IMG/VR virus record: IMGVR_UViG_3300027771_001853
Location: 62,001 to 126,000 of that record
Length of the DNA: 64,000 nucleotides
Strand: one strand, 5' to 3'
Under the pieces are notes generated by a model. It was given only the letters and a program-made list of their open reading frames with translations. It was not told where the DNA came from and made no database searches. A program made the translations under genes and the position numbers. Below are positions 651 to 30,366 of the stretch, piece by piece. Numbering within the stretch: position 1 is the first letter of the stretch; the number at the start of each line of letters is the position of its first letter.

Positions 651-1334
651 CTACTTCTTAATTTCTCTCTTAGATTTTACAATATCGTCAATGATACCAT
701 ATTTCTTAGCTTCTTCCGCATTTAACCATAAATCTCTTTGGGCATCCTTTTCTACTCTTTTTGCTGTTTTACCACAGTATGCCCCTAGTAGTTTAAATAA
801 CGTATCATTTACGTTTTCCCATTCTTTCATGGTAATTCTTGCGTCTTGTATATTACCTACAGCTCCACCACTTGATTGGTGTAACATTGTTCTACTAAAC
901 CTTAAGGAGTACCTTTTTCCTTTGGTCCCGGCTCCTAATATTAAGGACCCCATTGATGCTGCCATACCGGTATTGATTGTTACTATGTCTGGTTTTACGT
1001 AATCCATAACATCTATAATGCTTAGACCAGATTTAACTGAACCACCTGGACTATCAACATGCATTGTTATATCGTCGTCACTTACACTATCTAAAAACAT
1101 TAGTTGTGCTTGTACCACAGTAGACATTCTGTCATTTACTTCACCTGCTACCCATAATAATCTATCCATCATTAATCTAGAAAACACGTCCATAGCTGTA
1201 ACATTTAATTGTCTTTCTTCTAAAATTAATGGTGTTAAACTATTTTCTATGTGTTGTTGGTATTGGTGTTGTTCTAACCCACTTATGCCGTGATTGTGTA
1301 ATGCGTATTTTTCAAATTCTTTTTTTATATCCAT
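651..1334 (-). CDS. clpP: ATP-dependent Clp protease proteolytic subunit
   Basis: MDVFSRLMMDR, SPGGSV, GMAASMG (catalytic Ser), MLHQ (His), RDLWLNAEEAKKYGIID. Confidence 0.96.
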   Translation of the reverse strand: MDIKKEFEKYALHNHGISGLEQHQYQQHIENSLTPLILEERQLNVTAMDVFSRLMMDRLLWVAGEVNDRMSTVVQAQLMFLDSVSDDDITMHVDSPGGSVKSGLSIIDVMDYVKPDIVTINTGMAASMGSLILGAGTKGKRYSLRFSRTMLHQSSGGAVGNIQDARITMKEWENVNDTLFKLLGAYCGKTAKRVEKDAQRDLWLNAEEAKKYGIIDDIVKSKREIKK

Positions 1335-1345
1335 TTTGTTTTTTT

Positions 1346-2497
1346 TTAATAAGGTAAAAATTCTTTTAGTTTATTTAATCTTTCCCAAGGGAAATCTTTT
1401 GTTTTGTCATCTGGTTCAATTAAATGACCGAAGTGACCATTAAGTGAAGTTTTTAAATATATGGGATTTAAAAGTCCCATTTCTCTAATAGCGTCATCTA
1501 TATTTAAAGGAAATAAATCGAGAACTAAACTATAGATAAAGTCATGTGGGACAAATGGTTTTTCTCTACCGTAATCTAATGATAAAAATTTACCATCTGA
1601 TTGTCCAATAATAAAGGATATTCCTACAGTACATTCCTTTGCCCATCCTGCCGCTACTATATGTTTAGCTATCCATCTTGCTAGATAAGCTCCCGACCTA
1701 TCTACTTTAGATGGGTCTTTACCTGAAAAAGCTCCACCACCAACAGGACTATAGGGACCATATTGGTCAATCACTATCTTTCTTCCCGTTAAACCACAGT
1801 CAGCGTCAGGACCACCTACAGTCCATGGACCAGCTGGGTTAAATAAAAACTTAGTATCTTCATCAAAGTAATTTCTTATCTCTTCAGTTTCATCAACCAA
1901 CAAAGACACCATAAACTCCTTATTTCTATATTGTTTTGGGTCTATAAAAACTGGATGCATAGTAGAAATGACCATTTCTTTAACCTTTTGTGGTATACCA
2001 TCTTTATACTCTATTGAAATCTGGGATTTGGCGTCAGGACCTAATTTGTCATTTAGTAATACTTTACCTAATAATTTCCTAGACAGATACGACCCTAAAG
2101 GCATATAGTTAGGTGCTTCTTGAGAAGCATACCCATATACAAAACCTTGGTCACCTGATACTATAGTATTTTTTTGTAGACTGGCGAGTTCTGGGGATTG
2201 TTTATCTATGAAACTTATATGGTTTACATGTTTATCACTAAAGTTAGCCTCACTACTAGTATAACCTAAAAGTCTAGTTACTTTTTCTACGACATCTTGG
2301 GTATCTATTGTCTCTTTGGAGGTTACCTCACCAGCTACAATAGAAACCTGATTTTTAACCATTGTTTCTACAGCGACTTTAGAAGTCGGGTCTTTCTCCA
2401 GGTATGCATCCAATATAGCATCTGAAATACAGTCAGCGACTTTATCTGGATGCCCTGGAGATACACATTCTGTGGTTATAATTTTTACTCTACTCAT
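1346..2497 (-). CDS. metK: S-adenosylmethionine synthetase
   Basis: ECVSPGHPDKVADCISDAILD, GDQG, DCGLTGRKIVIDQYG, GGGAFSGKDPSKVDRSGAY, GHFG. Confidence 0.97.
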   Translation of the reverse strand: MSRVKIITTECVSPGHPDKVADCISDAILDAYLEKDPTSKVAVETMVKNQVSIVAGEVTSKETIDTQDVVEKVTRLLGYTSSEANFSDKHVNHISFIDKQSPELASLQKNTIVSGDQGFVYGYASQEAPNYMPLGSYLSRKLLGKVLLNDKLGPDAKSQISIEYKDGIPQKVKEMVISTMHPVFIDPKQYRNKEFMVSLLVDETEEIRNYFDEDTKFLFNPAGPWTVGGPDADCGLTGRKIVIDQYGPYSPVGGGAFSGKDPSKVDRSGAYLARWIAKHIVAAGWAKECTVGISFIIGQSDGKFLSLDYGREKPFVPHDFIYSLVLDLFPLNIDDAIREMGLLNPIYLKTSLNGHFGHLIEPDDKTKDFPWERLNKLKEFLPY

Positions 2498-4814: not shown

Positions 4815-6617
4815 ATGTTATTAACTGAAAATAGGGTCTCCAAAGTAAAAGAAATGTACAACATACCGTCGGAGGTATGGGAACCTATGGTTACCGGTAG
4901 TGCTGCTATTTCACCTAATCAAAAATATTTAGAGTGGATTGCTAAACAATGGGAGGGAGCTACATTATCACCAGAAGATTCTGGTACTCGTAATTATGTT
5001 GGTGGTACCCTTCCTGGTTTACTTACTACTGTAGAAGAATTTGATAGGGTAAGACCTAACCTTAAAAAGAAAGATTTGTATCAATATCGTGATAGACAAG
5101 AGGTAATCGATAGTCTAGAAGGTTATAAATTGGAGAAGATTAGGAATATAGAAACCCATGATGAGTCTGAGGTGGTGTACGAAAATAATAGATTCAAGGT
5201 AGTTGTCCCTAAGTCCCATACCGCATCATGTTATTATGGTGCTGGTACCAAATGGTGTACAGCTTCTAAAGGAAATCCAAATCATTTTACCAACTACGAT
5301 AAAGCGGGTAAATTGTTTTATATTTTGGATAAACAGGCACCAACATCCAGCCTTTACTATAAAGTTGCTTTAAATAAAACCTATAAAGGTGGTGATACCT
5401 GGTATGACGCAATAGATGATGTAATGACAGCATCTAATTTAGATGGGTATATTGATACGTTAAATAAATTCGAAATAATTAATAAGATTAAAGAATATTT
5501 TAAATTTACATATGATGATGAAATTTCAAAAATAAGTGATGAAGAAAAACAACGGGAATTAGAAAGGATAGCTAGAGAAGCTGAATGGGCACAAAGAAGG
5601 AGAGAGAGAGAACAACGTCTTGAAACTGTAGCGAACCAAAGAAGAGCTTCTGATGCCTGGAAACCTGGAGAGGGTGGGACTTTAGGTGAATTGGCTAATG
5701 CGTTAATGGAATGGTTAAAAGATAACGATAAGTGGGATACTGACAATACCGAAGCGATTGGCGATTTAGTTGGTGAAATTGAGTCCATGCGTAATGATAT
5801 GGAAAATGACCCTGATGTTATAGCTGACATTGATGGTGAAAGAGCACAGGATTATGGTCAAGACTTGGGGAATCTAGAGGATAGTCTTGAGTCACTTAGG
5901 AATGAAAAACATGACGTATACGACCTGAGACAAGACGAAAGTAGTCATTATGGTTTACCTATATTTGAATATAACGATGAGGAGTATTCTATAGGTGACG
6001 ATATTATGGCAAATGAAGCAGCTTGGGACCAAGTCGATAATCTATTAGATGATATTGGTTTTAATGGGTTTTCAGCTGGGATGATGGAATGGTATGTAGA
6101 TGGTGAGATGGTAGCTGATGATTTTGAAAGTATGTTTTACGATGATGTATCAGATTCACCTGAAGATTATTTAGATGTGGATGATGATAGAGAACTAACT
6201 GATACTGCTGTAGAACAACTAGAAGCTATGAGTGAACAAATTGGTGAATACCAAGTTGAGTTGGAGGATACAGACATTAGTGACGAAATAGATAGAGAAT
6301 ACCTAGTTGACCAAATAGAAGCATTAGAAGAGGCTAAAGTGGATTTAATGGATGATGAAGATAGTTACGAGTGGACAGAATACGCTAAGGAGGAATACGT
6401 GAAGAGAAGACTTGACGAGGTTAGAAATGACCCCGTAGAGTTCCTACAAGATTATGGTTACGGTACGGAAACTTATGAACGATATATAGATAGAGATAAA
6501 TTTATAGAGGGTGTTATAGATGCTGATGGTAGAGCTAATGGACTTTCTTCCTATGATGGGGAAGAAGGTGAGGTTTCCTATGGGGGTGACTGGTATTACA
6601 TTTATAGGTTAAATTAA
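4815..6617 (+). CDS. SCxYG-WCT (PcfJ-like) core protein with very acidic C-terminal half
   Basis: MLLTE leader; NQKYLEW, KKDLYQY, SCYYGAGTKWCTAS, GKLFYI; C-terminal ~300 aa strongly D/E-rich. Confidence 0.75.
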   Translation: MLLTENRVSKVKEMYNIPSEVWEPMVTGSAAISPNQKYLEWIAKQWEGATLSPEDSGTRNYVGGTLPGLLTTVEEFDRVRPNLKKKDLYQYRDRQEVIDSLEGYKLEKIRNIETHDESEVVYENNRFKVVVPKSHTASCYYGAGTKWCTASKGNPNHFTNYDKAGKLFYILDKQAPTSSLYYKVALNKTYKGGDTWYDAIDDVMTASNLDGYIDTLNKFEIINKIKEYFKFTYDDEISKISDEEKQRELERIAREAEWAQRRREREQRLETVANQRRASDAWKPGEGGTLGELANALMEWLKDNDKWDTDNTEAIGDLVGEIESMRNDMENDPDVIADIDGERAQDYGQDLGNLEDSLESLRNEKHDVYDLRQDESSHYGLPIFEYNDEEYSIGDDIMANEAAWDQVDNLLDDIGFNGFSAGMMEWYVDGEMVADDFESMFYDDVSDSPEDYLDVDDDRELTDTAVEQLEAMSEQIGEYQVELEDTDISDEIDREYLVDQIEALEEAKVDLMDDEDSYEWTEYAKEEYVKRRLDEVRNDPVEFLQDYGYGTETYERYIDRDKFIEGVIDADGRANGLSSYDGEEGEVSYGGDWYYIYRLN

Positions 6618-8185
6618 TGAAAAGATTGAAAAACATATTATTAGAAGGAAGAATAGAAGACGCACAACGACACTTTGAAGACTCTGTTGGGTCTTGGCCT
6701 GTTGCAGAACCAGGTAACCCAGCTGGGGTTGGGGCACAGACTAATTTAGATGGTGTATTAAAACATTTTACACAGAACGACCCTTCAGGTAACAACAAGT
6801 ATCTTATGTGGATGGTTAAAATGTATCTTAATCCAGAAGAAAGAGGAACATCACCTAATGACATATCATCCGTAGTACAAAGATTCCATAAGAATGTAGG
6901 TAGGTTAAGTACAGCACTTATAATTAATATGGATATATTTGACCCTAGTAGTAGGATAGCTACTTCACCAAAGAATCTAGATTCTTATGGGGATATATCA
7001 CAAGTAGAAAGGGTTATGGATGAAGTAGACTCAATACAAACAAAAAAAGAAAAAGAAACCCAAGCTAAATCAGGTGTGGATAAATTATATGAAGATGAGA
7101 GATGGTTGTTGGTTAAACCAAATACCTACGAGGGTTCTTGTTATTATGGTTCATCAACCAAATGGTGTACTTCTAGTAAAACCACAACGACACACTTTGA
7201 GGATTACTCTAAGAGAGGAAATTTATATTATATTATAGATAAGAGTCATCAATTAGGTGATTATTATAAAATTGCGTTATTTAAAGAATGGGATGGTAAT
7301 GAAGAATGGTACGATAGAGCAGATGATAGTTTAAATCAAGGTACAATAAATGCTATTCGTTCTATGGTACCACAAGACTTAATTAAAGCACTGGATAATT
7401 CTTACAGGAACACCAAACCACCTGAACAAGAAACAATGTTCTACACTTTAGATGAATTCCAAAATAAACTAACTGAATATATTAAATCAAAACCATCACT
7501 ACAAACTATTACTACTGAGAGTGGTATTTGGAAATGGGAATCTGACATCATGAATCAGACGTGGACTTGGAGAAACTCAAAAGATAATGAAGAGTTGAGT
7601 TTACAAGCCACTCCTTTTTGGGACGGCCTGGATGGAATACCTTTCGACTCTTATTCGGATGATGACGAATTCGGTAACTTCCATGATACACTGTTAGCTC
7701 CAGAAGTGTGGGAATATAATGAATATATAGGAAAGAATGAGTTTTTAAGTAAAACTAATACCGATATGGGGGTTAAATTATTTCTTACTTTTATGTACCT
7801 ACCTAAACTTAGGGAGGTTTTAACTGATGATTTCTTTAAACAGCAGGTTAATCGTGATTACACAATCTGGACCTCAAGTAACCCTGTTTCCACTTACACA
7901 TTTAAATGGCCACCTAAAAGTGGTTCGATGACACAACTTTTTACAGACTATATTAAACAAAATCCTGGGTCTAGTCCTAATGATTTTTATGAGGAAGTAT
8001 ACGGTAAACCTAGACCTAGAGGACATAACAATATGTTCTTTTCCTCCATTAAAGATTCGGGTATTGTAAAAATGGAAAGAGAGGGAAGACGATTTGTTTA
8101 CAGTTTAGGACCTAACTACAAAATGTGGACGAGGGGTAATTTACTTAGGTCAGGTAGGAGGAACATGAATGTAGGTTACTATTGA
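6617..8185 (+). CDS. SCxYG-WCT (PcfJ-like) core protein with C-terminal winged-helix-like domain
   Basis: MKRLKNILLE leader; DPSGNNKYLMW, SCYYGSSTKWCTSS, GNLYYI; C-term YIKQNPG...FFSSIKDSGIVKMEREGRRFVYSL (ArsR-like wing). Confidence 0.75.
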   Translation: MKRLKNILLEGRIEDAQRHFEDSVGSWPVAEPGNPAGVGAQTNLDGVLKHFTQNDPSGNNKYLMWMVKMYLNPEERGTSPNDISSVVQRFHKNVGRLSTALIINMDIFDPSSRIATSPKNLDSYGDISQVERVMDEVDSIQTKKEKETQAKSGVDKLYEDERWLLVKPNTYEGSCYYGSSTKWCTSSKTTTTHFEDYSKRGNLYYIIDKSHQLGDYYKIALFKEWDGNEEWYDRADDSLNQGTINAIRSMVPQDLIKALDNSYRNTKPPEQETMFYTLDEFQNKLTEYIKSKPSLQTITTESGIWKWESDIMNQTWTWRNSKDNEELSLQATPFWDGLDGIPFDSYSDDDEFGNFHDTLLAPEVWEYNEYIGKNEFLSKTNTDMGVKLFLTFMYLPKLREVLTDDFFKQQVNRDYTIWTSSNPVSTYTFKWPPKSGSMTQLFTDYIKQNPGSSPNDFYEEVYGKPRPRGHNNMFFSSIKDSGIVKMEREGRRFVYSLGPNYKMWTRGNLLRSGRRNMNVGYY

Positions 8186-8215
8186 ATCATAAAGTATTTA
8201 TTTATAAAATAAGAT

Positions 8216-10141
8216 ATGAGTTTTACTGGATGTAGACCGGGTGAAAATTGTTCGGATTACGGTTATATTTTTAATGATGTATTACCCCCAAATATTGTTG
8301 ATGGGTTAAACGAATTATATGGGTGTGGCATCAACCCTTACTCTTTTATTGATTGCAGTATTTTAACTGGTTGTACTAGTGTGTTAAGTGGTTTAACTGG
8401 CCCTTATATAACTGGTGCTACCTACAACCCTATTAGTGGTTGTCTTACGTTTTTTAGACAAAGTGGTGCCACATTTAGTACATGTGGTTTTTTAACGGGT
8501 GCAACTTCTACAAGTAGTAGTTACTGGTCTGCTGGAACTAGAGGTATTACGTATACCGGAGGGTCTAGTACCTATGTCGGTGTTGGTACTGAGGACCCTA
8601 ATAAAACTTTAACTATTAAGGGTAGTGTGTCCGCTACTACCACATTGGATGTGGATGGAAACACAACCTTATCAACACAATTAAACATTAGTGGTAATAC
8701 AGTTACTTCAGGTAACATATCTTTAACACAAGATAGTTATTTGTATTTTGGGTATGATGTGAATAACCAAACATACATTAGAGAAGATGGGAGTAATTTA
8801 GTGATTGATGCTAACGATGATATACTCTTAAGACCCGATGATGATTTAAAAATAGCTTATGGTAGTACACAATATGCCTCATTTGATGGTTCAAAATCTT
8901 CTTTAGTTATTGGTACTACGGTTGTACCAAACTCTAGATTAACTGTAGATGGTACTCAAAGTGGTTCAGTTAGTTCTATTGCTGAGGCCAATGACCCAAC
9001 GAGTTCCGTAGCACTGGCAAATTTCTTTAATACAAGGTCCGGTACAGTGAGTACCGCTAACCTATTTATAGGTGAGAAAAGAAGTTCTGGGACAGGTGAT
9101 TTCTTTATATACCCACAAGGTACAAACGCAGAAATTTTAATTAATAGTGATTTAGTTCTTGGAGCTTACAAGGCTGGGACCCTATACTCTAGTGAACTTT
9201 TAAGATTAAAAGGTAGTACTGCTAGGGTAGGTATTAAGAATGTTTCACCTGCTTTTGATTTGGATGTTGGTGGTTCCCAAAATGCAACTACAATATATAG
9301 TGCTGGTACCGAATTAAGTTTATTATTTAGAATGAGTAATAGGGGGCATTGGTCAGCTAACACAGCTGGACTAATATACACTGGAGGCACATCAACTACA
9401 GTAGGTATTGGTACTTCGGTACCTAACAAAGAATTAACAGTTATAGGTTCTGTTTCAGCCACGACTGATATGTATGTGGGTAATGATTTAAAGGTTAGTG
9501 GTAATTTAGGTATTGGGGTGACCCCTACTAATGCGTTACACATATCTACAGCTGATAATGTAGTAGCGAAAATTATTAGTACGGACGCTACAGCAACAAT
9601 TGAACTTAGTGATAGTAACACCACCAATGCCGCAGCTTTTAAAAGAGTAACAGATAATTTACAATTCGTTCCAAACGGAGGTAATGTAGGTATAGGTACA
9701 AGTCCAGTAACCAAATTAGATGTACATCACGACCCAACTGATATAAGTGATAATACTGGTGGTGGTGACGTAATTACTTTTGGTATTGAGTCGAACGCAA
9801 ATAGTTTATCTGCTGGAACACTAATGTGGTTACATACTGACGGTTACTGGTATAACACAGATGCTGACAATGTTGCGAGTGGTGCTACTAATTTAATAGC
9901 TATAGCTTTAGGGACCGCAGTAAGTGACGGAATGTTAATTAATGGTTATTACGACTACAGTTCAAATCTCCAGGGGACCTTCGCTAAAGGTATGGCATGT
10001 TATGTGTCAGAGAATGCTGGATTTGTGGATTTTACTGCACCTTCTGGTACTTACGATTATGTAAGAATCTTAGGTTATGGGACAGATAAAGTTAATATAA
10101 TATACTTTAACCCTGATAAGACTTGGGTTGAGTTGTCTTAG
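8216..10141 (+). CDS. fibre protein (tail or head fibre) with VGIGT repeats
   Basis: Repeated VGVGT/VGIGT..P motifs, G/S/T-rich beta composition, internal duplication WSA..G..YTGG.ST.VG.GT..PNK.LT..GSVSATT. Confidence 0.7.
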   Translation: MSFTGCRPGENCSDYGYIFNDVLPPNIVDGLNELYGCGINPYSFIDCSILTGCTSVLSGLTGPYITGATYNPISGCLTFFRQSGATFSTCGFLTGATSTSSSYWSAGTRGITYTGGSSTYVGVGTEDPNKTLTIKGSVSATTTLDVDGNTTLSTQLNISGNTVTSGNISLTQDSYLYFGYDVNNQTYIREDGSNLVIDANDDILLRPDDDLKIAYGSTQYASFDGSKSSLVIGTTVVPNSRLTVDGTQSGSVSSIAEANDPTSSVALANFFNTRSGTVSTANLFIGEKRSSGTGDFFIYPQGTNAEILINSDLVLGAYKAGTLYSSELLRLKGSTARVGIKNVSPAFDLDVGGSQNATTIYSAGTELSLLFRMSNRGHWSANTAGLIYTGGTSTTVGIGTSVPNKELTVIGSVSATTDMYVGNDLKVSGNLGIGVTPTNALHISTADNVVAKIISTDATATIELSDSNTTNAAAFKRVTDNLQFVPNGGNVGIGTSPVTKLDVHHDPTDISDNTGGGDVITFGIESNANSLSAGTLMWLHTDGYWYNTDADNVASGATNLIAIALGTAVSDGMLINGYYDYSSNLQGTFAKGMACYVSENAGFVDFTAPSGTYDYVRILGYGTDKVNIIYFNPDKTWVELS

Positions 10142-10527
10142 TTAAGACCCACATACCCATAACCGGGTATCTCTTGGAATGGTCCGTCAGGTATGTCACT
10201 TTCTTCAATTCTTTGAGGAATAACTTTTAATATGGGTGTACCATCTTCATTAACACCCACAATCTTTACCATATCCTTAGCTATTAATTCTTTAAGTTCA
10301 TACCTAATGTTTTGTTGTATTACGTCTTGTATCACTTCTGCTATCTCTTGTTTTGTTAAGGTTGGGTCCCCGTGAGTTTCATAATTCTTTGTAGCTACCT
10401 CTTCTAAACCCTCGTAAAACATATCCTCATCAGCATATGGGATATTGAACATTTGATTTCTAGCGTTTTCATTGGTCTCAAAAAAATTCCTAATGTTAGT
10501 TATGTATATTTGAATGTCTATTTCCAT
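10138..10527 (-). CDS. hypothetical protein
   Basis: 129 aa ORF; TATATTTG -7 element at 10554-10561 upstream. Confidence 0.7.
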   Translation of the reverse strand: MEIDIQIYITNIRNFFETNENARNQMFNIPYADEDMFYEGLEEVATKNYETHGDPTLTKQEIAEVIQDVIQQNIRYELKELIAKDMVKIVGVNEDGTPILKVIPQRIEESDIPDGPFQEIPGYGYVGLN

Positions 10528-10609
10528 TATTTATAAATATTAATAAGTTCATACAAATATAAAAACTTTTTTCTTTAATGTCATAATATTTATAATTAAA
10601 GATATTAAT

Positions 10610-11506
10610 ATGAGTAACCATAAAATTATACTTACCCCGGAACAAATCAAATACGTCTTAAAAGAAAGTAAAGGCAAGAATAACAATAAGGACGAAAAAC
10701 TATTGACTGAAGTTGATTGGAATTTTGTCGCTGATATAGTTGGTATTGTAGACCCTACAGGTGTTGTGGATTTAGCAAATGGTATATCTTACGCAACTCA
10801 AGGAAGATGGTTATTTGCTTTTTTAAGTTGGGTAGCTATAGTCCCTTACGTGGGTGATGCGGTAGCTAAACCTTTTTCTTTCATGTTAAGGGGTAGTAAA
10901 GGTGCTATTAAAAGTGTTGATGCCGCAATCAAAACTGGTAAAGCTGCTAATGTGTCAGCAGCACTAGGTAAAGCTGGTGTTAAAGAAGGTGCGGAAGCTT
11001 TCGTTAAGGGAGCGACAAAACCTATGGAAGGGATATTAACAAAACTAAAAAAAGTCCCTTTGTTTGGTACGGTTGCAAAAGACGCTGGGAAATGGTGGAA
11101 AATTTTCTCTACAGGGGCTGTTATGAAATCCTCACTTAAAACGACTAAATTAGGTACGGTCACTGGTTTAGGTATAAGAAGAGGATTTGCTAAAGCAGCT
11201 ACTAAACTTACTAGTGGTAATAAAAATGTAGTGTCAGCCTCAATAGCTTTAATGACCCCAAGTGCTTTAAGGACTTTAGGTTTTAGAACTAAAATGTATG
11301 GTAGATTAGCTGGTGTTGGTACCGGTGGTGAAAAGGCTGGTGTAATGGGGGATTTTCTAGAAACCTCTGAAGGTGAACAATGGTGGGATGGTTTAAGTGA
11401 TGACCAACAAAACCATTTAACTAGTCAAGAAACTGTAGAAGAAGGAGGTGAAGGTAAAAGTAATGATGAACTTATGAAGATTTTATCTAAACTAGTTTCA
11501 TCTTAA
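10610..11506 (+). CDS. pre-toxin TG (PT-TG)-like domain protein with N-terminal leader
   Basis: ADIVGIVDPTGVVDLANGISYATQGRWLFAFLSWVAIVPYVGDAVAK resembles pre-toxin TG hairpins; leader MSNHKIILTPEQIKYVLKES...LLTE. Confidence 0.6.
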   Translation: MSNHKIILTPEQIKYVLKESKGKNNNKDEKLLTEVDWNFVADIVGIVDPTGVVDLANGISYATQGRWLFAFLSWVAIVPYVGDAVAKPFSFMLRGSKGAIKSVDAAIKTGKAANVSAALGKAGVKEGAEAFVKGATKPMEGILTKLKKVPLFGTVAKDAGKWWKIFSTGAVMKSSLKTTKLGTVTGLGIRRGFAKAATKLTSGNKNVVSASIALMTPSALRTLGFRTKMYGRLAGVGTGGEKAGVMGDFLETSEGEQWWDGLSDDQQNHLTSQETVEEGGEGKSNDELMKILSKLVSS

Positions 11507-12783
11507 CTTATTAAAAAGTTATTATCTTCTTCACCCCAATCTATAACTTCCTGAGGTACTACCATATTACTATTACCCCTAATATTAATCACTTCTAGGT
11601 TTGGTAGGGTTAGAACCGATAGTGGTAGACTTTTTAAGGATGGGTTATTAGGTACAGATATAAACTCTAGGTTAGTTAGGTCCCCTAAATTTTCAGGTAA
11701 TTCTGACAATGAGTTTTCTATATGTAAAACCTTTAAATTCTTAAAACTTAGTATTTTTTGTGATAGTGGGGACGCCGACTTACTCGTTTTACCACCATCC
11801 ATATCCAATCTAACTAATGTTTTTGGTAGCTTATCTAAGAAATCTTCAAATCCGTATATATTAATATACCTTTGTATTGCACCCTGTCCCTGAGATATTT
11901 CCACAGTATCTTTAAATTCGTCAGTAAGAAACTTAGCAAACTTTTCTTTAAAGAAAGCTTTTAATTCTGGGTATTCAGTAAAAAACTCACTTAAATCTAC
12001 GTTCCTATCTTCTGCATTCATAAATGAATTACTTTCGAAATGGAATTGGTGACTTCTACTTTCGTTAGGACTTTTATTTATATCCTCTTTACGTAAAACC
12101 ATATATAGTGGACCTTGTTTTGCGTAATGGTCATAATAGTTACTACCCTTTGAAGCTGTACACCATCTAGATTGTCCCCCACCATAATGACAGGAGGCTT
12201 CTTTAGTTTTAGGTACCATTATAATCCAATTAGAATCCTCCCATACAACATCCACGTCGTCTCTAACCCTCTCTGCTTTAGTTGTGGTAAGTTCTTCCTT
12301 ACTTACGTTATAGTCTTTTACTTGGTCGTATAACCCCTCAATACTAGGGATTCTATTTATATCTTTTTCACCTTTATACTTACCTGTCTTCTTTAAGTAA
12401 TCGAATTTCATTAAATCCTCTGTTACCTTATATAAATCTTCTATGAATAGACCCTGGGACTGGTCGAGTTCGTCTTTCCAAGATTGGGTACCATATTTGA
12501 ATTCCGCGTCTGCTTTTTGTTGTAATCCCATCCATTGTTTAATTAACCATTGGGTGTATGCACCAACTTTAGTGACATCTCTACTATCCCTATCACCTTC
12601 AAAATCACCCCTAGTAGTGGGGTCGGCTTGCATTAAGTCCGTTAATATATCTAATTCTATTTTAGGTTTTATAACCTTTCCCGAAGCTTTCGTTTTACTT
12701 TTCGCAAATTTATCTACTAAAACTTCGTAACGACTCTGTTCTAGTACTAATTTTTTAAGTATGTCAGTAATACCCATATTCAT
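11503..12783 (-). CDS. SCxYG-WCT (PcfJ-like) core protein with C-terminal leucine-rich repeats
   Basis: ILKKLVLE leader; ADPTT..GAYTQW, EKDINR, SCHYGGGQSRWCTAS, GPLYMV, QFHFES; LRRs LKVLHIENSLSELPENLGDLTNLEFISVPNNPSLKSLP..LPNLEVINIRGN. Confidence 0.8.
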   Translation of the reverse strand: MNMGITDILKKLVLEQSRYEVLVDKFAKSKTKASGKVIKPKIELDILTDLMQADPTTRGDFEGDRDSRDVTKVGAYTQWLIKQWMGLQQKADAEFKYGTQSWKDELDQSQGLFIEDLYKVTEDLMKFDYLKKTGKYKGEKDINRIPSIEGLYDQVKDYNVSKEELTTTKAERVRDDVDVVWEDSNWIIMVPKTKEASCHYGGGQSRWCTASKGSNYYDHYAKQGPLYMVLRKEDINKSPNESRSHQFHFESNSFMNAEDRNVDLSEFFTEYPELKAFFKEKFAKFLTDEFKDTVEISQGQGAIQRYINIYGFEDFLDKLPKTLVRLDMDGGKTSKSASPLSQKILSFKNLKVLHIENSLSELPENLGDLTNLEFISVPNNPSLKSLPLSVLTLPNLEVINIRGNSNMVVPQEVIDWGEEDNNFLIS

Positions 12784-13180: not shown

Positions 13181-13381
13181 TTATTTACCAACTTTCTTCA
13201 GTATTTTTCTTTCCATGTCTATTATAGTTTTTTCTAGATTTAAAATCTGTTTTTCGACAGTAAGTATTTGTTCTCTTTGTTCTCTAGATGCTTTTGCCTC
13301 CATAATTAACCAAGCGAATGCCACGACCTCTATAATAAATAATAATATTAATAGTGTTGTTTGTATCATATTACCTACCAA
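13181..13381 (-). CDS. small membrane protein with coiled-coil tail
   Basis: Hydrophobic N-terminal helix (TLLILLFIIEVVAFAWLI) then heptad repeats; real start may be the ATG of MIQT. Confidence 0.65.
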   Translation of the reverse strand: MVGNMIQTTLLILLFIIEVVAFAWLIMEAKASREQREQILTVEKQILNLEKTIIDMERKILKKVGK

Positions 13382-14546
13382 CTTCGTCCATATAGTTTTC
13401 CTGTGTTTCTTCCCAGGTTAACCCAATAACATCCCAATAGAATAACATTTCTGGTTTGATTCTGTCTTGTTCATGCATACTTTTATACCTTCTAATCGCT
13501 TTTTTCTTCCACCATTTATCCGTATATGGGATATCGTCTTGGAATTTCTTCTTCATATGTAGGTCTTTTTCTTCTATCTCTCCCCTTAAGAACTCACAAC
13601 CATTATCATACATCATTGCAAGATAGACACCTCTCTTGAACCCGTGGTCGTATTTTGAACCCTTTATCCCACAATGTTTAAAAACTTTGTTAAGTATGTT
13701 CTGTTTAGGTCCGGTAGCACTTATAGCTTTCGCGTGTTCTTCTGGGTGATTCTCTTTTAACCATTTATTCCAAGGAAGGTATGCACTATCATCAGGTTTT
13801 AATCTAACTTTACCAGATGTCTCACCCATTGTCTTAAAGTGTGGCATTCCATTATACATTGAGTTAATCCCGTATAGTGCTGTTGTCCCAACAGCAATCA
13901 ACTTATCACCGTATTTTTCTTCCCAAGCGTCTCTGATTGTTTTACAAGTAGTTAGTGCTGCTACTAATTTACCCATCAACATATTATACCCACCTGGTTG
14001 AGTGGAACATATGGTTGTAGCGATAGCTGTATTGTTTAACTTGTGTTGGTCAAACTTATTAGTTTTATCCCAACCTATGTAAGCATCTCTAACTTTAATA
14101 CTTGTAACGTCGGACCCCAAACAAATCAAACCAAGGACTTTATCTGTTTTCCTATCTCTTACCCAGAATTTCATATTACGTCCAGGATTTGCAACCCATT
14201 CCATTGTGTGGATAAGTTTACGATGGTTTACCCATTCGGTTACACCTTTTCCTGGTGTTGCCATTACAACATAAGGTTCTAACTCTTCAATTTGTTTTAT
14301 GGTACGTTCTACATCATCCAAATCTGATGGTACCCATAGATTTGTTCGGTAGTTGTACAATTTATTTTTTATCTTGGCCATCTTACCACCCTTATTCATT
14401 TCTTGCCACTTTTTATAAAGTGTTTGTTTCTCTACAGACATCTCTTTAAGTAAGTCTAGATTATCTATAAGGTTTTGTTTGTTTTCCTCAAAGTTAAAAG
14501 ACTCTTCAGCCTCTATAACATCAAATATTGTTGTTTGTTGTTTCAT
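13371..14546 (-). CDS. DUF4338 / DruA-like protein (possible GNAT/Mom-like fold)
   Basis: NPGRNMKFWVRD..TDKVLGLICLGSD....RDAYIGW, GYNMLMGKLVAAL, TTALYG..SMYNG, GETSG, HGFKRGVY. Confidence 0.7.
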   Translation of the reverse strand: MKQQTTIFDVIEAEESFNFEENKQNLIDNLDLLKEMSVEKQTLYKKWQEMNKGGKMAKIKNKLYNYRTNLWVPSDLDDVERTIKQIEELEPYVVMATPGKGVTEWVNHRKLIHTMEWVANPGRNMKFWVRDRKTDKVLGLICLGSDVTSIKVRDAYIGWDKTNKFDQHKLNNTAIATTICSTQPGGYNMLMGKLVAALTTCKTIRDAWEEKYGDKLIAVGTTALYGINSMYNGMPHFKTMGETSGKVRLKPDDSAYLPWNKWLKENHPEEHAKAISATGPKQNILNKVFKHCGIKGSKYDHGFKRGVYLAMMYDNGCEFLRGEIEEKDLHMKKKFQDDIPYTDKWWKKKAIRRYKSMHEQDRIKPEMLFYWDVIGLTWEETQENYMDEVGR

Positions 14547-14859: not shown

Positions 14860-15840
14860 TTACATCCCATGATTTAATAGTTTTTTACGTAAAGACTCAG
14901 CTAATATTTTTTCATCTTCTGTTAGGGGTCTTTCAAACCTAACATTTAACCTTATGACGTAGTCTCCATTACCACCTCTATTACTAAACCCTTTACCCCT
15001 TAATATTAATTCCATACTTGGGTTATGTAGTGGGGGTAATGTAGCATATAAGTCGTTATTTGGGTGGGGTATCCTTAATTTTTTACCAAGTAATAAATCT
15101 AATGGGTTAATTGTAGCTTCATAAACTAAATTATCACCTACTCTACCCAATTCTTCACTAGACAATACGTTTACAAATACCTGTAAATCCCCTGCCACAC
15201 CTCTATAAACCTCATTACCTTTACTAGCTATGGTGTAGTTAGCCCCATTATTAGTTCCTGGTGGTAATTTTATATCAAGAGTCTCATCTTTTAATTCACC
15301 ACCACCAAAACACCCACTAGTACCACAGGACTGACATTCTTGTCTAACTATTTGTCTAAAAAAAGTACTACCTACCATTCTCTCTATAGTCCCTTTCCCA
15401 TCACAATTAGGACATATAGCTCCAGAACAAAGTCTCCTATTGTATCTAATATTTTTATTTATACCAAAAAACGCTTCTTCAAATGTAACCGTGATGTTTA
15501 CTCTTAGTGACGTACCTTTCCTAGTCCTTTGTCTTTGTTGTTGATGATGTTGGTGTTGGTTCCCTGTCTGGTTGAAAAACTCGTTAAATAAATCATCCAT
15601 ACCACCAGCTGGTCCACCACCTCGCATCCCACTAAAAGGGTTGTTTAACTTATTATCATAGACGTTTTTCTTGTCTTTATCACCTAATGTGTTATACGCT
15701 TCTGATATCTCTTTAAATCTGTCAGCACCTTCAGGGTTTTTATCTGGGTGGTACTTTAACGATAATTTCCGATAAGTTTTTTTAATGTCTGTAGGGTTAC
15801 AATCTTTACTTATACCCAATATGTCGTAATAATTTTTCAT
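14860..15840 (-). CDS. dnaJ: DnaJ/Hsp40 co-chaperone with reduced zinc finger
   Basis: NYYDILG, HPDKN J-domain, G/F-rich region, CPNCDGKG and [12 protein letters not shown] and LRGKG C-terminal domain. Confidence 0.92.
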
Positions 15841-26863: not shown

Positions 26864-27754
26864 TTAAAGACAACTGAAATACCTTTCTCCTCTATCACAA
26901 AGGATAGTCAACGCTGTCGTTTTTTTATTATTCTTTAACCAGTTTTTTGCTGCTAGTACATTTGCTCCTGCACTCACCCCAACAAACAAACCTTTTTTTG
27001 CTAATTCTCTTGCTTTATTTTTTGCCTCTTCTGTTGAAACAGTAACGATTTCATCCACAAAATCAAGGTCAACTAAAAATTTACTACCGTCCCCTATTCC
27101 TTGTATCCCATGAAGACCTGATTCCCCACCACTCATTACTGGTGATTCCTCGGGTTCTATAGCTACTATCTTAATAGTTGGCCACATCTCTTTTAAGAAT
27201 TTACCCGTCCCCATTATAGTTCCACCTGTTCCTGTTCCCAAAATAAGTACATCTGGTTCTGGACCACCTTCGTTCTCATCTTTATATTGATTATATATTT
27301 CTGGACCAGTTGTTATGTAATGTGCTTGTACGTTTAAAGGGTTATGGAATTGGTTACAGTTAAACCAGTTGTTTTTTATTGCTAGTTTGTCCCTTAACTC
27401 TATCGCTCCATCAAAATCACCCTCACCAACCTCAATTAATTCAGCACCATAAAACTCAAACATCTGTTTTCTTTCTTCAGACATATTGCACGGCATTACA
27501 ATTTTTATTTTATACCCCCTTTCTGCAGCTAACATAGCAAAAGCAATCCCAGAATTACCAGAAGTCCCTTCAATTAATGTATCACCTTTACTTATTAATT
27601 TTTTATTTTCCGCATCATCAATAATGAATTTTGCCATCCTGTCTTTTACGGAACCAGAAGGGTTCATAAATTCAGCTTTACCCCATATTTTACACCCTTC
27701 TTCATCTAAACACAATAATGGGGTGTTACCAACATAATTTGATAGTTTATGCAT
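26864..27754 (-). CDS. cysK: PLP-dependent cysteine synthase (CysK/CysM family)
   Basis: VGNTPL, KAEFMNPSGSVKDR (PLP Lys), TSGNSG, NQFHNP, GTGTGGT, HGIQGIG, GVSAGAN, DRGERY. Confidence 0.92.
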   Translation of the reverse strand: MHKLSNYVGNTPLLCLDEEGCKIWGKAEFMNPSGSVKDRMAKFIIDDAENKKLISKGDTLIEGTSGNSGIAFAMLAAERGYKIKIVMPCNMSEERKQMFEFYGAELIEVGEGDFDGAIELRDKLAIKNNWFNCNQFHNPLNVQAHYITTGPEIYNQYKDENEGGPEPDVLILGTGTGGTIMGTGKFLKEMWPTIKIVAIEPEESPVMSGGESGLHGIQGIGDGSKFLVDLDFVDEIVTVSTEEAKNKARELAKKGLFVGVSAGANVLAAKNWLKNNKKTTALTILCDRGERYFSCL

Positions 27755-30059
27755 AACTTAATATTTTACTAAGATTGTTTTCTTTTTTAATTGTTAGTAC
27801 TTTGTCTGACCACTCTTTAACTAAATCATTATGTGTGATTACCAAAATCACTTCAAAATAATCCCTTATTTTTACAAAAAATTTACCTATTAATTCTAAA
27901 TTTTCGTTACTTACCTTACCATAAACCTCATCAAAACACACAACATTAGGTTTAGGTAATGAGCATACTCTAGCTAATACAGCTCTTAGGGCTAGTGATG
28001 CCACTGTTCTCTCGTAACCACTACCTGACCTCATTAATTTTTCTAACCCACTACTATTATCCACCATCCAAAACTCAACTTCATTTTTTTCATTCATTTT
28101 CAGTTCTAACGTAAATTCTGCACTATCAGACAACAACACCCCTAATTCGTTATTAATAAATGGCACCATACTCTTTAATATAGTTTTAGATATTCCGTTT
28201 TTTCCATAAACACTAAGGTAAGCTTTAAAAATCTTATCTACTTTTTCTTCTTCCTCAATCTTCTTTATTCTACCCTCATTTATTTTTATATCTTTTTTAA
28301 GATTACTAATATCATTTTCCACTCCTTTAATTTTTAATAGTGACCCTTGTTTTTCCGATTCTAGTGTTTCGATACGAGTTTTTGCTTTAACTAATTTAAG
28401 TTCTATGTCTCTATTCTGTTCTAACCTTTCCTTATTCTTATTCCAATTACTTAATATGATTTTTTTGTCTAATAAAGTTTTGTTTAATTTTTCAAACTCT
28501 AACTCTAACATAACATTTTTTAGTTTATCCCTATCATATTTTTCAAATTGTTTTTTAGATACTTCAATTTTATCAACTTCTGTGGTTTTATTAGATATTT
28601 TCTTATCGATATCTTTTATATTTTTTTCACACACAACTAAATTAGTTTGTGTTTCATCATTAAACTTTACTTGACTAAGTTTTAACCCACATAAACCACA
28701 AGTTTCACCACCTTCTATTCGTTTTTGTGATTTTTTGTACTCTTCTAGTTTTCCTTGCTGAACTCCCATTTCGTACTTTAGACCTTCTAGTGTTTTATTA
28801 ACTTTCTCGTGTTCTTCTTTATTGTAGAATATCTTAGGTTCTATTACTTTAAATTCCTCAAACTCTTTCTTTTTAGTACTAACCTTATCACTAAAAGTAG
28901 TTATAATCCCCTCTAACTCTATGGGGTCTAATTTGGTTAAACTTTCGTCAATATCGGTATGTTTCCTTTTTAACAAACCATCTTTATATGTTTGTCCTTT
29001 TTTTAACCTTTTATTTATATCTAATAAACTTTCATTTATTTCTTTAATCTCTTTATCGCTTTCTTTAATTGATTCGTTAAACCCTTCTATTTGGTGTGTT
29101 AGTTCTAACTTATTATATAGGTTGGATGTTAGACTTTTAGCCCACTCAGAATATATTTGTTTACATGTATCTTCTTTTTTCTTGAGTGAGTCAAGACCTA
29201 TGTAACGTGTTAGTACTTGCCCTCTAGCTGTAGGTTTAGCCTCTATTAGTGATTCTAGGTTAGTCCCTGTCGCTAATATGGTCATTAGAAAATCATCCAC
29301 AGTACCAATAGAATCTTTTATAAAGGTTTCTGTTTCTCTTCTTTGTTCTCCTTCTAAGTTTTGTAGTGTATTGTCCGATAGTTTTTTACTAAAATTTAAA
29401 GTAGTACTAACCGACCAATCCCCCTTCTTTGTTTTTTTCCTAACAATTGCTCTTTCGATAATATAATCATCCCCGTCAATTTGTACCTGTCCTCTAACTA
29501 GTACCCTATTTTTATCTGTGTACCTATTAAATATTTCTATTGCTTTAGCTGACTTGGTTGTTGTATTAAAAAATAAGAATAGTAGTAGGTCTACCGATAC
29601 CGTTGTTTTACCTCCAAAGTTAGATGGTATGGAATCTATTACGGTAATACCTTTAGAGTTTTCAAAATCAAGTTTATTGCCTTCACCAAATGATAAGAAA
29701 TTATCAAACTCAATCCATTTAATAATCCATTTTTTATGTTGTGGTGTGGTAGTTAAACCTATCTTTTCATTAACCTTATTATGTAATCTTTTAAAGTCTT
29801 CCCAACCGACATCAACCTTATGTTCTTTTAAATGTTCTTTAACCAAAGTAGTCTGGAAGGCCTCGTCTAGTATATTTTCACTAGCGTCTATGTTTTTAAC
29901 AACACCACCAACGTTTAAACTTTTAGTTATTACGTTAACTCTGGTTGTTTTATATTTTTTTTTAAAATATGTCTTTATCCTAGCAAGTTTTTCCTGTGTG
30001 AAATTTTCTGGAGTATCTTCCCAAGTAACCTTAATATATGGTTTAATCTCTTTATTCAT
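27747..30059 (-). CDS. SbcC/Rad50 (T4 gp46-like) SMC ATPase
   Basis: NFLSFG, Walker A NFGGKTT, long coiled coil with CGLC zinc hook, SGYE signature, CFDE Walker B, ITHN. Confidence 0.9.
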   Translation of the reverse strand: MNKEIKPYIKVTWEDTPENFTQEKLARIKTYFKKKYKTTRVNVITKSLNVGGVVKNIDASENILDEAFQTTLVKEHLKEHKVDVGWEDFKRLHNKVNEKIGLTTTPQHKKWIIKWIEFDNFLSFGEGNKLDFENSKGITVIDSIPSNFGGKTTVSVDLLLFLFFNTTTKSAKAIEIFNRYTDKNRVLVRGQVQIDGDDYIIERAIVRKKTKKGDWSVSTTLNFSKKLSDNTLQNLEGEQRRETETFIKDSIGTVDDFLMTILATGTNLESLIEAKPTARGQVLTRYIGLDSLKKKEDTCKQIYSEWAKSLTSNLYNKLELTHQIEGFNESIKESDKEIKEINESLLDINKRLKKGQTYKDGLLKRKHTDIDESLTKLDPIELEGIITTFSDKVSTKKKEFEEFKVIEPKIFYNKEEHEKVNKTLEGLKYEMGVQQGKLEEYKKSQKRIEGGETCGLCGLKLSQVKFNDETQTNLVVCEKNIKDIDKKISNKTTEVDKIEVSKKQFEKYDRDKLKNVMLELEFEKLNKTLLDKKIILSNWNKNKERLEQNRDIELKLVKAKTRIETLESEKQGSLLKIKGVENDISNLKKDIKINEGRIKKIEEEEKVDKIFKAYLSVYGKNGISKTILKSMVPFINNELGVLLSDSAEFTLELKMNEKNEVEFWMVDNSSGLEKLMRSGSGYERTVASLALRAVLARVCSLPKPNVVCFDEVYGKVSNENLELIGKFFVKIRDYFEVILVITHNDLVKEWSDKVLTIKKENNLSKILSYA

Positions 30060-30366
30060 CTTTTTTAGGTTTATTTTCTTCAAACCATTCAATAATAGCG
30101 TTTAGTGACCACACACCACCACTAGCTAACATCCCATCAAAAAACACATTACTATATGGGATGACGACTAATGTTTCTGTTGGTGAGAAGAAAACCAAAG
30201 AGAAAAAGAACCCTACCCATGTAGAAGTACACATCATACACCCTAACAAATCCCCAAAGAATTTTGAGTGTCTGGTTATCCAATTTCTTATATTGTCGAA
30301 TATACTCCCAAAAACCAAAATCTGAGACATCCCGTAAGCTGCTAAAATCCAAATAATTAATTCCAT
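30052..30366 (-). CDS. DUF1360-like membrane protein
   Basis: IFDNIRNW...LLGCMMCTSTWVG with hydrophobic helices. Confidence 0.65.
   Translation of the reverse strand: MELIIWILAAYGMSQILVFGSIFDNIRNWITRHSKFFGDLLGCMMCTSTWVGFFFSLVFFSPTETLVVIPYSNVFFDGMLASGGVWSLNAIIEWFEENKPKKDE

Follow-up and report, generated by a model that had tools for sequence, protein, structure and literature searches.

The window analysed here, a stretch of 64 kb, is part of the IMG/VR contig IMGVR_UViG_3300027771_001853 (297,623 bp, low G+C), whose source is a poorly annotated marine jumbo phage of roughly 300 kb. Three open reading frames (ORFs) of the window, termed ORF1, ORF2 and ORF3, encode proteins that join a common N-terminal head to mutually unrelated C-terminal tails. 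Judged from their sequences, ORF1, ORF2 and ORF3 are three anciently diverged paralogues. The head is supported as a divergent sister branch of the PcfJ superfamily, related to it by remote homology and lying outside PF14284 as this family is defined. Direct support exists for the homology of the heads, for tails that are diverse yet stably inherited, for confinement to viruses, for the remote kinship with PcfJ and for the annotation of one homologue as a virion protein. A role as virion-associated modular effectors is put forward tentatively.

Three paralogues with a common head

The features of the three genes are located as follows.

4815-6617, plus strand: ORF1, 600 aa, PcfJ-like core followed by an acidic tail
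4815-5459, plus strand: ORF1 core module, aa 1-215, helical N-terminal half and alpha/beta half, the fold being inferred from the ORF2 model
5229-5258, plus strand: ORF1 Cys139 to Cys148 (SCYYGAGTKWC), Cys148 being the family-invariant cysteine of the Trp-Cys (W-C) pair
5670-6614, plus strand: ORF1 acidic tail, aa 286-600, 315 aa, 31% Asp plus Glu (D+E), net charge -78
6615-6619, plus strand: ORF1/ORF2 junction TAATG, the ORF1 stop sharing one base with the ORF2 start
6617-8185, plus strand: ORF2, 522 aa, PcfJ-like core, alpha/beta middle domain and winged helix
6617-7411, plus strand: ORF2 core module, aa 1-265, with an AlphaFold2 model of aa 45-250
7139-7168, plus strand: ORF2 Cys175 to Cys184 (SCYYGSSTKWC), Cys184 being the invariant cysteine
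7412-7927, plus strand: ORF2 middle alpha/beta domain, aa 266-437, no known relative found
7928-8152, plus strand: ORF2 C-terminal winged-helix-like domain, aa 438-512, the last ~75 aa, model-based
11503-12783, minus strand: ORF3, 426 aa, PcfJ-like core followed by a short leucine-rich repeat (LRR) tail
11974-12783, minus strand: ORF3 core module, aa 1-270
12160-12192, minus strand: ORF3 Cys198 to Cys208 (SCHYGGGQSRWC), Cys208 being the invariant cysteine
11545-11823, minus strand: ORF3 leucine-rich repeats, aa ~321-413, about 3-4 units

BLASTP comparison of the N-terminal parts revealed similarity between the heads in all pairs, with E-values of 2e-26 for ORF1 and ORF2 (33% identity over 195 aa), 6e-15 for ORF1 and ORF3, and 5e-14 for ORF2 and ORF3. 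Moreover, a core profile run against all six-frame ORFs of the window matched exactly ORF1, ORF2 and ORF3, the next-best match having an E-value of 0.21. An initial annotation of this DNA had proposed three ORFs with a common core at these positions, and this proposal is borne out; the location of ORF3 on the minus strand had gone unstated. The objection raised along with it, that the cores might not be homologous, does not apply, as both the pairwise comparison and the profile identify homologous heads.

The most prominent common element is the block S-C-x-Y-G...(K/R)-W-C-T, which reads SCYYGAGTKWCTAS in ORF1, SCYYGSSTKWCTSS in ORF2 and, with a one-residue insertion, SCHYGGGQSRWCTAS in ORF3. 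Its two cysteines are the sole cysteines of each of the three proteins. Further motifs listed in the initial annotation are present with small deviations: the leading proline of P..(K/A)Y..W occurs only in ORF1, and ORF3 carries Met in place of Val in the motif ..V.P. Because of the one-base overlap of stop and start codon at the TAATG junction, translation of ORF1 and ORF2 is likely to be coupled.

Fold and conserved residues of the head

The head occupies the N-terminal ~220-260 residues. An AlphaFold2 model of ORF2 residues 45-250, calculated with a 114-sequence alignment, reached a predicted local distance difference test (pLDDT) score of 96.1 and displays a helical bundle, followed by an alpha/beta domain composed of two strands, two helices and three to four strands. 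The conserved positions are mostly polar and comprise, in ORF2 numbering, Asp55, Lys61, Tyr62, Lys119, Asp120, Glu159, Asp160, Ser174, Cys175, Thr181, Trp183, Cys184, Tyr197, Lys209, Lys218, Asp233 and Asp236. Besides the invariant Trp-Cys, the head carries Ser, Thr, Tyr, Lys, Lys and Asp residues that are nearly invariant. All 315 domain copies retain the W-C pair, but only 276 of the 315 retain the first cysteine. The second cysteine is therefore the essential one, and the two do not constitute an obligate disulfide or metal site.

The initial annotation had considered the core to be related to the GNAT family. GNAT structures are indeed the best matches in the PDB when the whole core is searched; however, E-values of 0.31-2, template modelling scores (TM) of 0.20-0.29 and a root-mean-square deviation (rmsd) of ~7 Å place these matches at noise level. 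GNAT sequence models did not match ORF1-3, nor any of the single-core relatives scanned (90 in set A3 and 49 in set A8), and found two of 46 larger relatives. As all 46 larger relatives contain the head and yet only two are matched, a separate domain fused to the head is the most likely site of these hits. Furthermore, the strict acetyl-CoA motif Q/R-x-x-G-x-G/A is absent: the consensus A-S-C-x-Y-G-x-G-T-K-W-C contains G-x-G, but no Gln or Arg three residues earlier. Neither fold nor sequence nor motif thus lends support to a GNAT relationship of the head.

Relation to the PcfJ superfamily

The proposal that the core is PcfJ-like holds at the level of remote homology. For ORF1-3 themselves no Pfam model matched the head even at E≤1, and the gathering score of PF14284 was not reached. 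PF14284 did, however, match 11 of the 185 scanned relatives, namely 6 of the 90 in set A3 (best E 5e-5), 4 of the 46 larger proteins (best E 3.5e-7) and 1 of the 49 in set A8. A hidden Markov model (HMM) built locally from enterococcal PcfJ and canonical PcfJ domains gave 21 matches inside the head envelope, always in the alpha/beta half. Alignment of the head against pCF10-type PcfJ with hhalign yielded an E-value of 0.0013 at a probability of 18% and placed the cysteine of W-C-T on that of H-C-V-G. The structural check recommended in the initial annotation gave a divided outcome: a Foldseek search of BFVD returned PcfJ-annotated phage proteins right after the true members (E 2e-4 to 6e-2, probability up to 1.0), whereas no neighbour was obtained from the PDB. 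In the Atlas, 39 of 100 neighbours belong to PcfJ-bearing clusters. Finally, the metagenomic protein P0250 (3,332 aa) has, alongside two heads of the kind described here, a catalytic domain of eukaryotic-type topoisomerase IB and canonical PcfJ domains in three copies (Pfam E 1.7e-33). It is the agreement of the PF14284 matches in relatives, the local HMM, hhalign, Foldseek and P0250 that supports placement of the head as a sister branch. Both heads of P0250 lack the first cysteine.

PcfJ and the head share an alpha/beta unit of ~100 residues, in which a strand, a helix, the conserved cysteine, a helix and three strands follow each other in the same order and the invariant cysteines align. Both occur in mobile elements and phages, and in P0250 within one giant protein. 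They differ in that the head carries Trp in place of His before the cysteine, possesses an additional S-C in 88% of its copies, and has a helical bundle of ~110 residues with motifs of its own (DPSGNxKY and PKDINxY) in front of the alpha/beta unit. The position within the protein differs as well, since 211 of 219 single-head relatives carry the head at the N-terminus, whereas the PcfJ domain of pCF10 is C-terminal (approximately residues 350-430 of a protein of ~445 aa).

Canonical PcfJ was found in 278 phage records, mostly Herelleviridae of Firmicutes. In plasmid pCF10 (NC_006827; region L001:15874-17984), pcfJ overlaps the end of a gene annotated as 'Cas9 inhibitor AcrIIA9 family protein', with a DpnD/PcfM gene close by, so that its neighbourhood is anti-defence-like.

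Size and distribution of the family

A core profile built from seven sequences was searched against 1.84 billion representative proteins clustered at 50% identity and retrieved 9,386 clusters at E≤1e-3, of which 5,592 remained at E≤1e-10. A 22-base degenerate motif encoding Y-G-x-G-T-K-W-C-T-A had one match in 596 Gb of cellular genomes, located on a contig of a metagenome-assembled genome, versus at least 120 in IMG/VR. No close relatives were found in 185,579 cellular genomes, and the Atlas neighbours are 73-100% viral. By these searches, the family is essentially confined to viruses. Cultured carriers are without exception jumbo phages: PA5oct-like Pseudomonas phages, Caulobacter phage CcrBL9 and Salicola phage SCTP-2. 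All of these were reached by tblastn of ORF3 against phages; the corresponding search with the ORF2 core remained without a match at E≤1e-3.

Multiplication of the head is frequent, both within and between genes. Among 268 retrieved proteins, 50 contain more than one head (40 with two, nine with three and one with five), including close orthologues of ORF2. At 29 of 73 IMG/VR loci at least two family genes lie within ~20 kb, and one locus holds five in tandem. This densest array (L048:3542-11215, IMGVR_UViG_3300022916_000007) comprises genes for proteins of 357-439 aa within 8 kb.

Diversity and inheritance of the C-terminal tails

Pairwise BLASTP detected no mutual similarity between the tails of ORF1, ORF2 and ORF3, and the descriptions given to them in the initial annotation, a hyper-acidic region, a winged-helix-like domain and LRRs, proved apt. 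The acidic character of the ORF1 tail follows from its D+E content, and the tail is kept end to end in orthologues at 42-51% identity. Because a viral cluster of 395 aa in the Atlas matches this tail alone (TM 0.61-0.63), the acidic module may exist also without a head. The PBECR5 model of Pfam gave a weak match to this tail (E 0.013, 15.8 bits, the cutoff being 25) that was put down to composition, and an ArdA-bearing Atlas cluster with a score of 0.51 was dismissed as noise.

For the ORF2 tail the model has a pLDDT of 88.7, exceeding 90 over the winged-helix part. The 50 best PDB matches of the latter are nearly all winged helix-turn-helix (wHTH) domains of the ArsR/SmtB/MarR type, with a TM by target of 0.45-0.57 and an rmsd of 2-4 Å; the probability reaches 0.99, but the E-values are only 0.06-0.3. 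In the model, three helices and a beta-hairpin wing can be superimposed on solved wHTH domains, which is the expected composition of this fold. No wHTH match was obtained at the sequence level in Pfam or in searches of PDB chains. The tail of ORF3, in turn, is matched by Pfam LRR_13 over residues 348-407 (E 3e-7, 30.8 bits against a cutoff of 30.1) and more weakly by LRR_14 and LRR_4; the LRR parts of the XopAE, XopAC and XopL models stay far below their cutoffs.

The arrangement of a constant core with differing tails extends to the whole family. As suggested in the initial annotation, the C-terminal partners of relatives retrieved by profile search were catalogued, and 190 tails of at least 100 aa fell into at least 32 classes unrelated by BLAST. 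Recognisable among them are LRR_4, LRR_5, LRR_8, Ank, WG repeats, LRV, DUF4116, FNIP, beta-propeller, GNAT and Phage_L5_gp82. These recognisable tails are binders, and no toxin tail was found. Fusions in the family include wHTH, GNAT, topoisomerase IB and poly(A)-polymerase/CCA-type domains. In P0156 (1,689 aa), for instance, the head is joined to a nucleotidyltransferase of the poly(A)-polymerase/CCA-adding type (PolyA_pol together with its RNA-binding domain), and in P0150 (1,656 aa) it is fused to DUF7178 and DUF3293.

Despite this diversity, the tails are stably inherited. The same tail is present in 104 of 120 ORF2 orthologues, although it diverges faster than the head (43% versus 66% identity), and the acidic tail of ORF1 and the LRR tail of ORF3 are as conserved as their heads. 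Order and orientation of ORF1, ORF2 and ORF3 are kept in relatives down to ~40% identity. On a tree of 190 heads the tail class changes 32 times, the minimum being 31 and shuffled labels requiring ~130 changes; it should be considered here that tail classes defined by BLAST favour monophyly and that the sample contains close relatives. As the tail class is nearly monophyletic on the head tree, these comparisons suggest ancient domain accretion followed by vertical inheritance and retention of paralogues, and no cassette-like swapping. The initial annotation had regarded the tails as exchangeable, as in polymorphic conflict systems, and had named invariance of the C-termini among orthologues as evidence to the contrary. 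With tails that orthologues keep to ~40% identity, this half of the proposal fails.

Possible function of ORF1-3 and alternatives

It is possible, though on balance still short of probable, that ORF1-3 are modular effectors associated with the virion, in which the head depends on its cysteine and the tail selects the target. ORF1-3 would then be made late, together with the adjacent tail-fibre gene, and the proteins of the family would be packaged in the virion and act in the newly infected cell. The head would contribute one common Cys-dependent chemistry, or docking to one common partner, and the tail would choose the target on which the head acts. The acidic tail of ORF1 could serve as a nucleic-acid mimic or as a binder of basic proteins, the winged helix of ORF2 could bind DNA or protein, and the LRRs of ORF3 protein. 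In this scheme cysteine catalysis, packaging and ejection in the window's phage, and the existence of host targets are what we infer. The reading is favoured because of four observations: the homologue EST35_0205 of Pseudomonas phage PA5oct, which matches the head profile at E 3e-39, is annotated as 'structural protein, ESI-MS/MS' (electrospray ionisation tandem mass spectrometry); ORF1 and ORF2 form a tight co-oriented unit with a tail-fibre-like gene, connected by the TAATG overlap and then by 30 nt; giant relatives contain nucleic-acid enzymes; and the recognisable tails are of the binder type. The study of PA5oct detected 93 proteins in its particles (PMC7318152). The location of pcfJ beside an AcrIIA9-family gene in pCF10 was likewise counted in favour.

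Several points weigh against this interpretation. The link to the virion is a single homologue in a distant phage, EST35_0205, and mass spectrometry of particles can pick up contaminants. Among 148 non-redundant proteins encoded beside family genes, portal proteins occur three times, terminases twice and virion structural proteins four times, which is about chance level for large phages, and apart from the fibre-like gene the paralogue block is flanked by the non-structural genes for ClpP, S-adenosylmethionine (SAM) synthetase, a DruA-like protein and DnaJ. No enzymatic fold or motif is recognised in the head: Foldseek of the core against the PDB returned nothing at E<0.3 (best E 0.31, TM at most 0.29), comparison of the core and the ORF2 tail with PDB chains, by sequence and by profile, brought up chance-level matches only, and PADLOC and NCBIfam contained nothing for the cores. 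Within the head no conserved His is available to partner the cysteine. Furthermore, a literature search found no functional study of PcfJ or PF14284; the same applies to DUF4116 in connection with phages.

A structural role has to be considered as well. The head could be a virion-attachment domain that anchors tails displayed as accessory adhesins, receptor-binding or decoration modules. Receptor-binding proteins classically pair a constant N-terminus with a C-terminus that varies, several tails consist of adhesin-type repeats (BspA-type LRR_5, WG repeats, beta-propellers), and the presence of several paralogues per genome resembles the multi-fibre sets of large phages. Detection of the PA5oct homologue in particles and the position of the co-oriented ORF1-ORF2 pair directly upstream of the tail-fibre-like gene would also fit such an anchor. 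However, other tails and fusion partners (Ank, wHTH, GNAT, topoisomerase IB, poly(A)-polymerase/CCA-type) are directed at the cell interior or at nucleic acids; the PcfJ domain, a relative of the head, is present in conjugative plasmids, which form no virion; an invariant cysteine amid dense polar conservation is unusual in a passive anchor; and one polypeptide can hold up to five heads. An anchor is considered rather unlikely. The same low probability is assigned to an intracellular adaptor that remains unpackaged, whose head docks to a common phage or host machine and whose tails recruit substrates, by analogy with F-box or PRANC proteins or with protease adaptors. Binder tails on a constant head have the architecture required for this, and the phage-encoded ClpP and DnaJ are candidate machines, their genes lying 3.5 kb upstream of the paralogue block and 2 kb past ORF3 in an arrangement kept in the relative L003. 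In addition, MecA, an adaptor of ClpC, is the top named feature neighbour of the alpha/beta half in the Atlas. Its score of 0.87 is at chance level, though, given that shuffled sequences reach it a third of the time, and MecA was set aside along with DUF3843, EcoRI_methylase and SopA (0.75-0.87). Moreover, the ORF2 orthologue of L004, a relative of 424 kb, has neither ClpP nor DnaJ nearby, and an adaptor would leave the PA5oct virion annotation unexplained.

The version given in the initial annotation, which makes the head a GNAT-related acyltransferase within a polymorphic conflict system whose C-terminal recognition cassettes are actively exchanged, is very improbable. GNAT structures head the PDB list, a G-x-G adjoins the cysteine and the family has many tail types; against this stand the insignificance of those matches, the missing Gln or Arg of the motif, the failure of GNAT models on the cores, the stable and nearly monophyletic inheritance of the tails, and the lack of a toxin tail or an evident immunity-type gene. 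Immediately downstream, ORF1 is followed by ORF2, ORF2 by the tail-fibre-like gene and ORF3 by the end of a convergent 298-aa ORF without known family; no immunity-like gene was recognised downstream of ORF1-3, small ORFs being outside that look.

The virion-effector reading finds counterparts in known systems. Alt and the internal proteins of phage T4 are packaged in the virion, injected, and encoded among late genes (PMC5512222). In a similar manner, ORF1 and ORF2 lie beside a structural (fibre) gene and a homologue was detected in virions; in contrast to Alt, the head contains no ADP-ribosyltransferase (ART) or other known enzymatic domain, and packaging and ejection would have to be assumed for the window's phage. 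Polyvalent proteins, as surveyed by Iyer et al. 2017 (PMC5512222), are multidomain proteins of phages and conjugative elements with proposed delivery together with the DNA, and neither PcfJ nor the present head is among the domains of that survey. Likewise, members of the present family can reach great size (up to 3,332 aa), combining 2-5 heads with topoisomerase IB or a nucleotidyltransferase, and EST35_0205 is annotated in virions. Two or more distinct domains per polypeptide, the defining feature of polyvalent proteins, are found in P0250 and P0156, where the role of the domains in conflict is putative. ORF1-3, on the other hand, comprise only 2-3 domains, and no MuF or portal fusion was seen.

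Modular effectors that combine a constant domain with repeat binders are exemplified by the Ank-PRANC/F-box-like proteins of poxviruses and by bacterial LRR-NEL ligases of the IpaH type. The analogy is one of working principle: a constant domain would be directed by an LRR, Ank or other repeat scaffold that chooses the partner, and many paralogues occur per genome. The present head differs by its N-terminal position and by bacterial hosts, and no relationship of sequence or fold to F-box, PRANC or NEL domains was found by Foldseek in the PDB and BFVD.

In its most far-reaching form, which seems doubtful at present, the proposal states that the head, as the sister branch of PcfJ, is an unrecognised, virus-only, Cys-dependent enzyme fold that large phages load into particles in several versions, each of which, once ejected, covalently modifies or processes a different host factor chosen by its tail, be it DNA-bound, basic or nucleic-acid-binding, or a protein. 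If true, this would constitute a general take-over or anti-defence toolkit of 'one chemistry, many addresses' and provide a first function for the PcfJ of conjugative plasmids. The PcfJ superfamily and the PHROG families phrog_28193 and phrog_17056 were already known as entries of 'unknown function'. What is added here is a huge branch confined to viruses that possesses an extra helical half, a W-C cysteine that is strictly invariant, a grammar of head plus stably kept tail, polyproteins with several heads, and a connection to a virion protein from a phage that can be cultured. Counting more than 9,000 clusters at 50% identity, the family defined by the head ranks among the larger phage protein families that await characterisation, and knowledge of its function would annotate thousands of phage genes and probably also explain the PcfJ of enterococcal plasmids and Herelleviridae phages. 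The LRR, Ank, wHTH and acidic tails offer ready hypotheses on interaction partners, and Pseudomonas phage PA5oct represents a culturable model.

Genomic context

The following further genes were located in the window.

651-1334, minus strand: ClpP, E 3.7e-49 to solved ClpP structures
1346-2497, minus strand: SAM synthetase
8216-10141, plus strand: tail-fibre-like gene, 641 aa, beginning 30 nt past ORF2
13371-14546, minus strand: DruA-like gene (DUF4338), Pfam DruA 1.4e-23, PADLOC DruA 9.5e-25
14860-15840, minus strand: DnaJ, full-length with J domain and C-terminal domain
27747-30092, minus strand: SbcC-like gene
45223-47547, minus strand: 774-aa protein with a weak SprB-repeat match (E 5e-5, below cutoff)
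47552-55771, minus strand: ORF of 2,739 aa, adjoining the 774-aa SprB-repeat-like protein

DruA is a component of the Druantia anti-phage system, and the SprB repeat is found in a gliding adhesin of Bacteroidota. Eight of the approximately twelve large ORFs between 37 and 64 kb were scanned (the 2,739-aa ORF lying outside the scan) and gave no match in PHROGs or Pfam. Compared with 50,697 phage records, the DNA of the 8-kb region showed no similarity match, and a scan for promoters and terminators returned the same counts as shuffled sequence.

ORF1, ORF2, the fibre-like gene and the 298-aa ORF form a plus-strand island (4815-11506) in a window that is otherwise encoded almost entirely on the minus strand, and the sign of the GC skew flips over exactly this island. 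The phage genes for ClpP, SAM synthetase and DnaJ are situated on both sides of the paralogue block, an arrangement that is kept in the relative L003, which also has a DruA homologue at the same position.

The tail-fibre-like protein is rich in Gly, Ser, Thr and Asn and contains the internal repeat …YTGG(S/T)STxVG(V/I)GTxxPNKxLT(I/V)xGSVSATT… twice; its orthologue in L003 is longer (813 aa). The C-terminus resembles annotated tail fibres of Flavobacterium phages (42% identity, E 9e-10) and also of cyanophages. Because the Flavobacterium matches are tail fibres of vB_FspM_immuto, this similarity hints at a host among the Flavobacteriia. In L004, a gene for an Fe/Mn superoxide dismutase (9351-10004) is located directly upstream of the ORF2 orthologue, and L004:1-1466 encodes a TonB-dependent receptor-like protein composed of Plug and beta-barrel.

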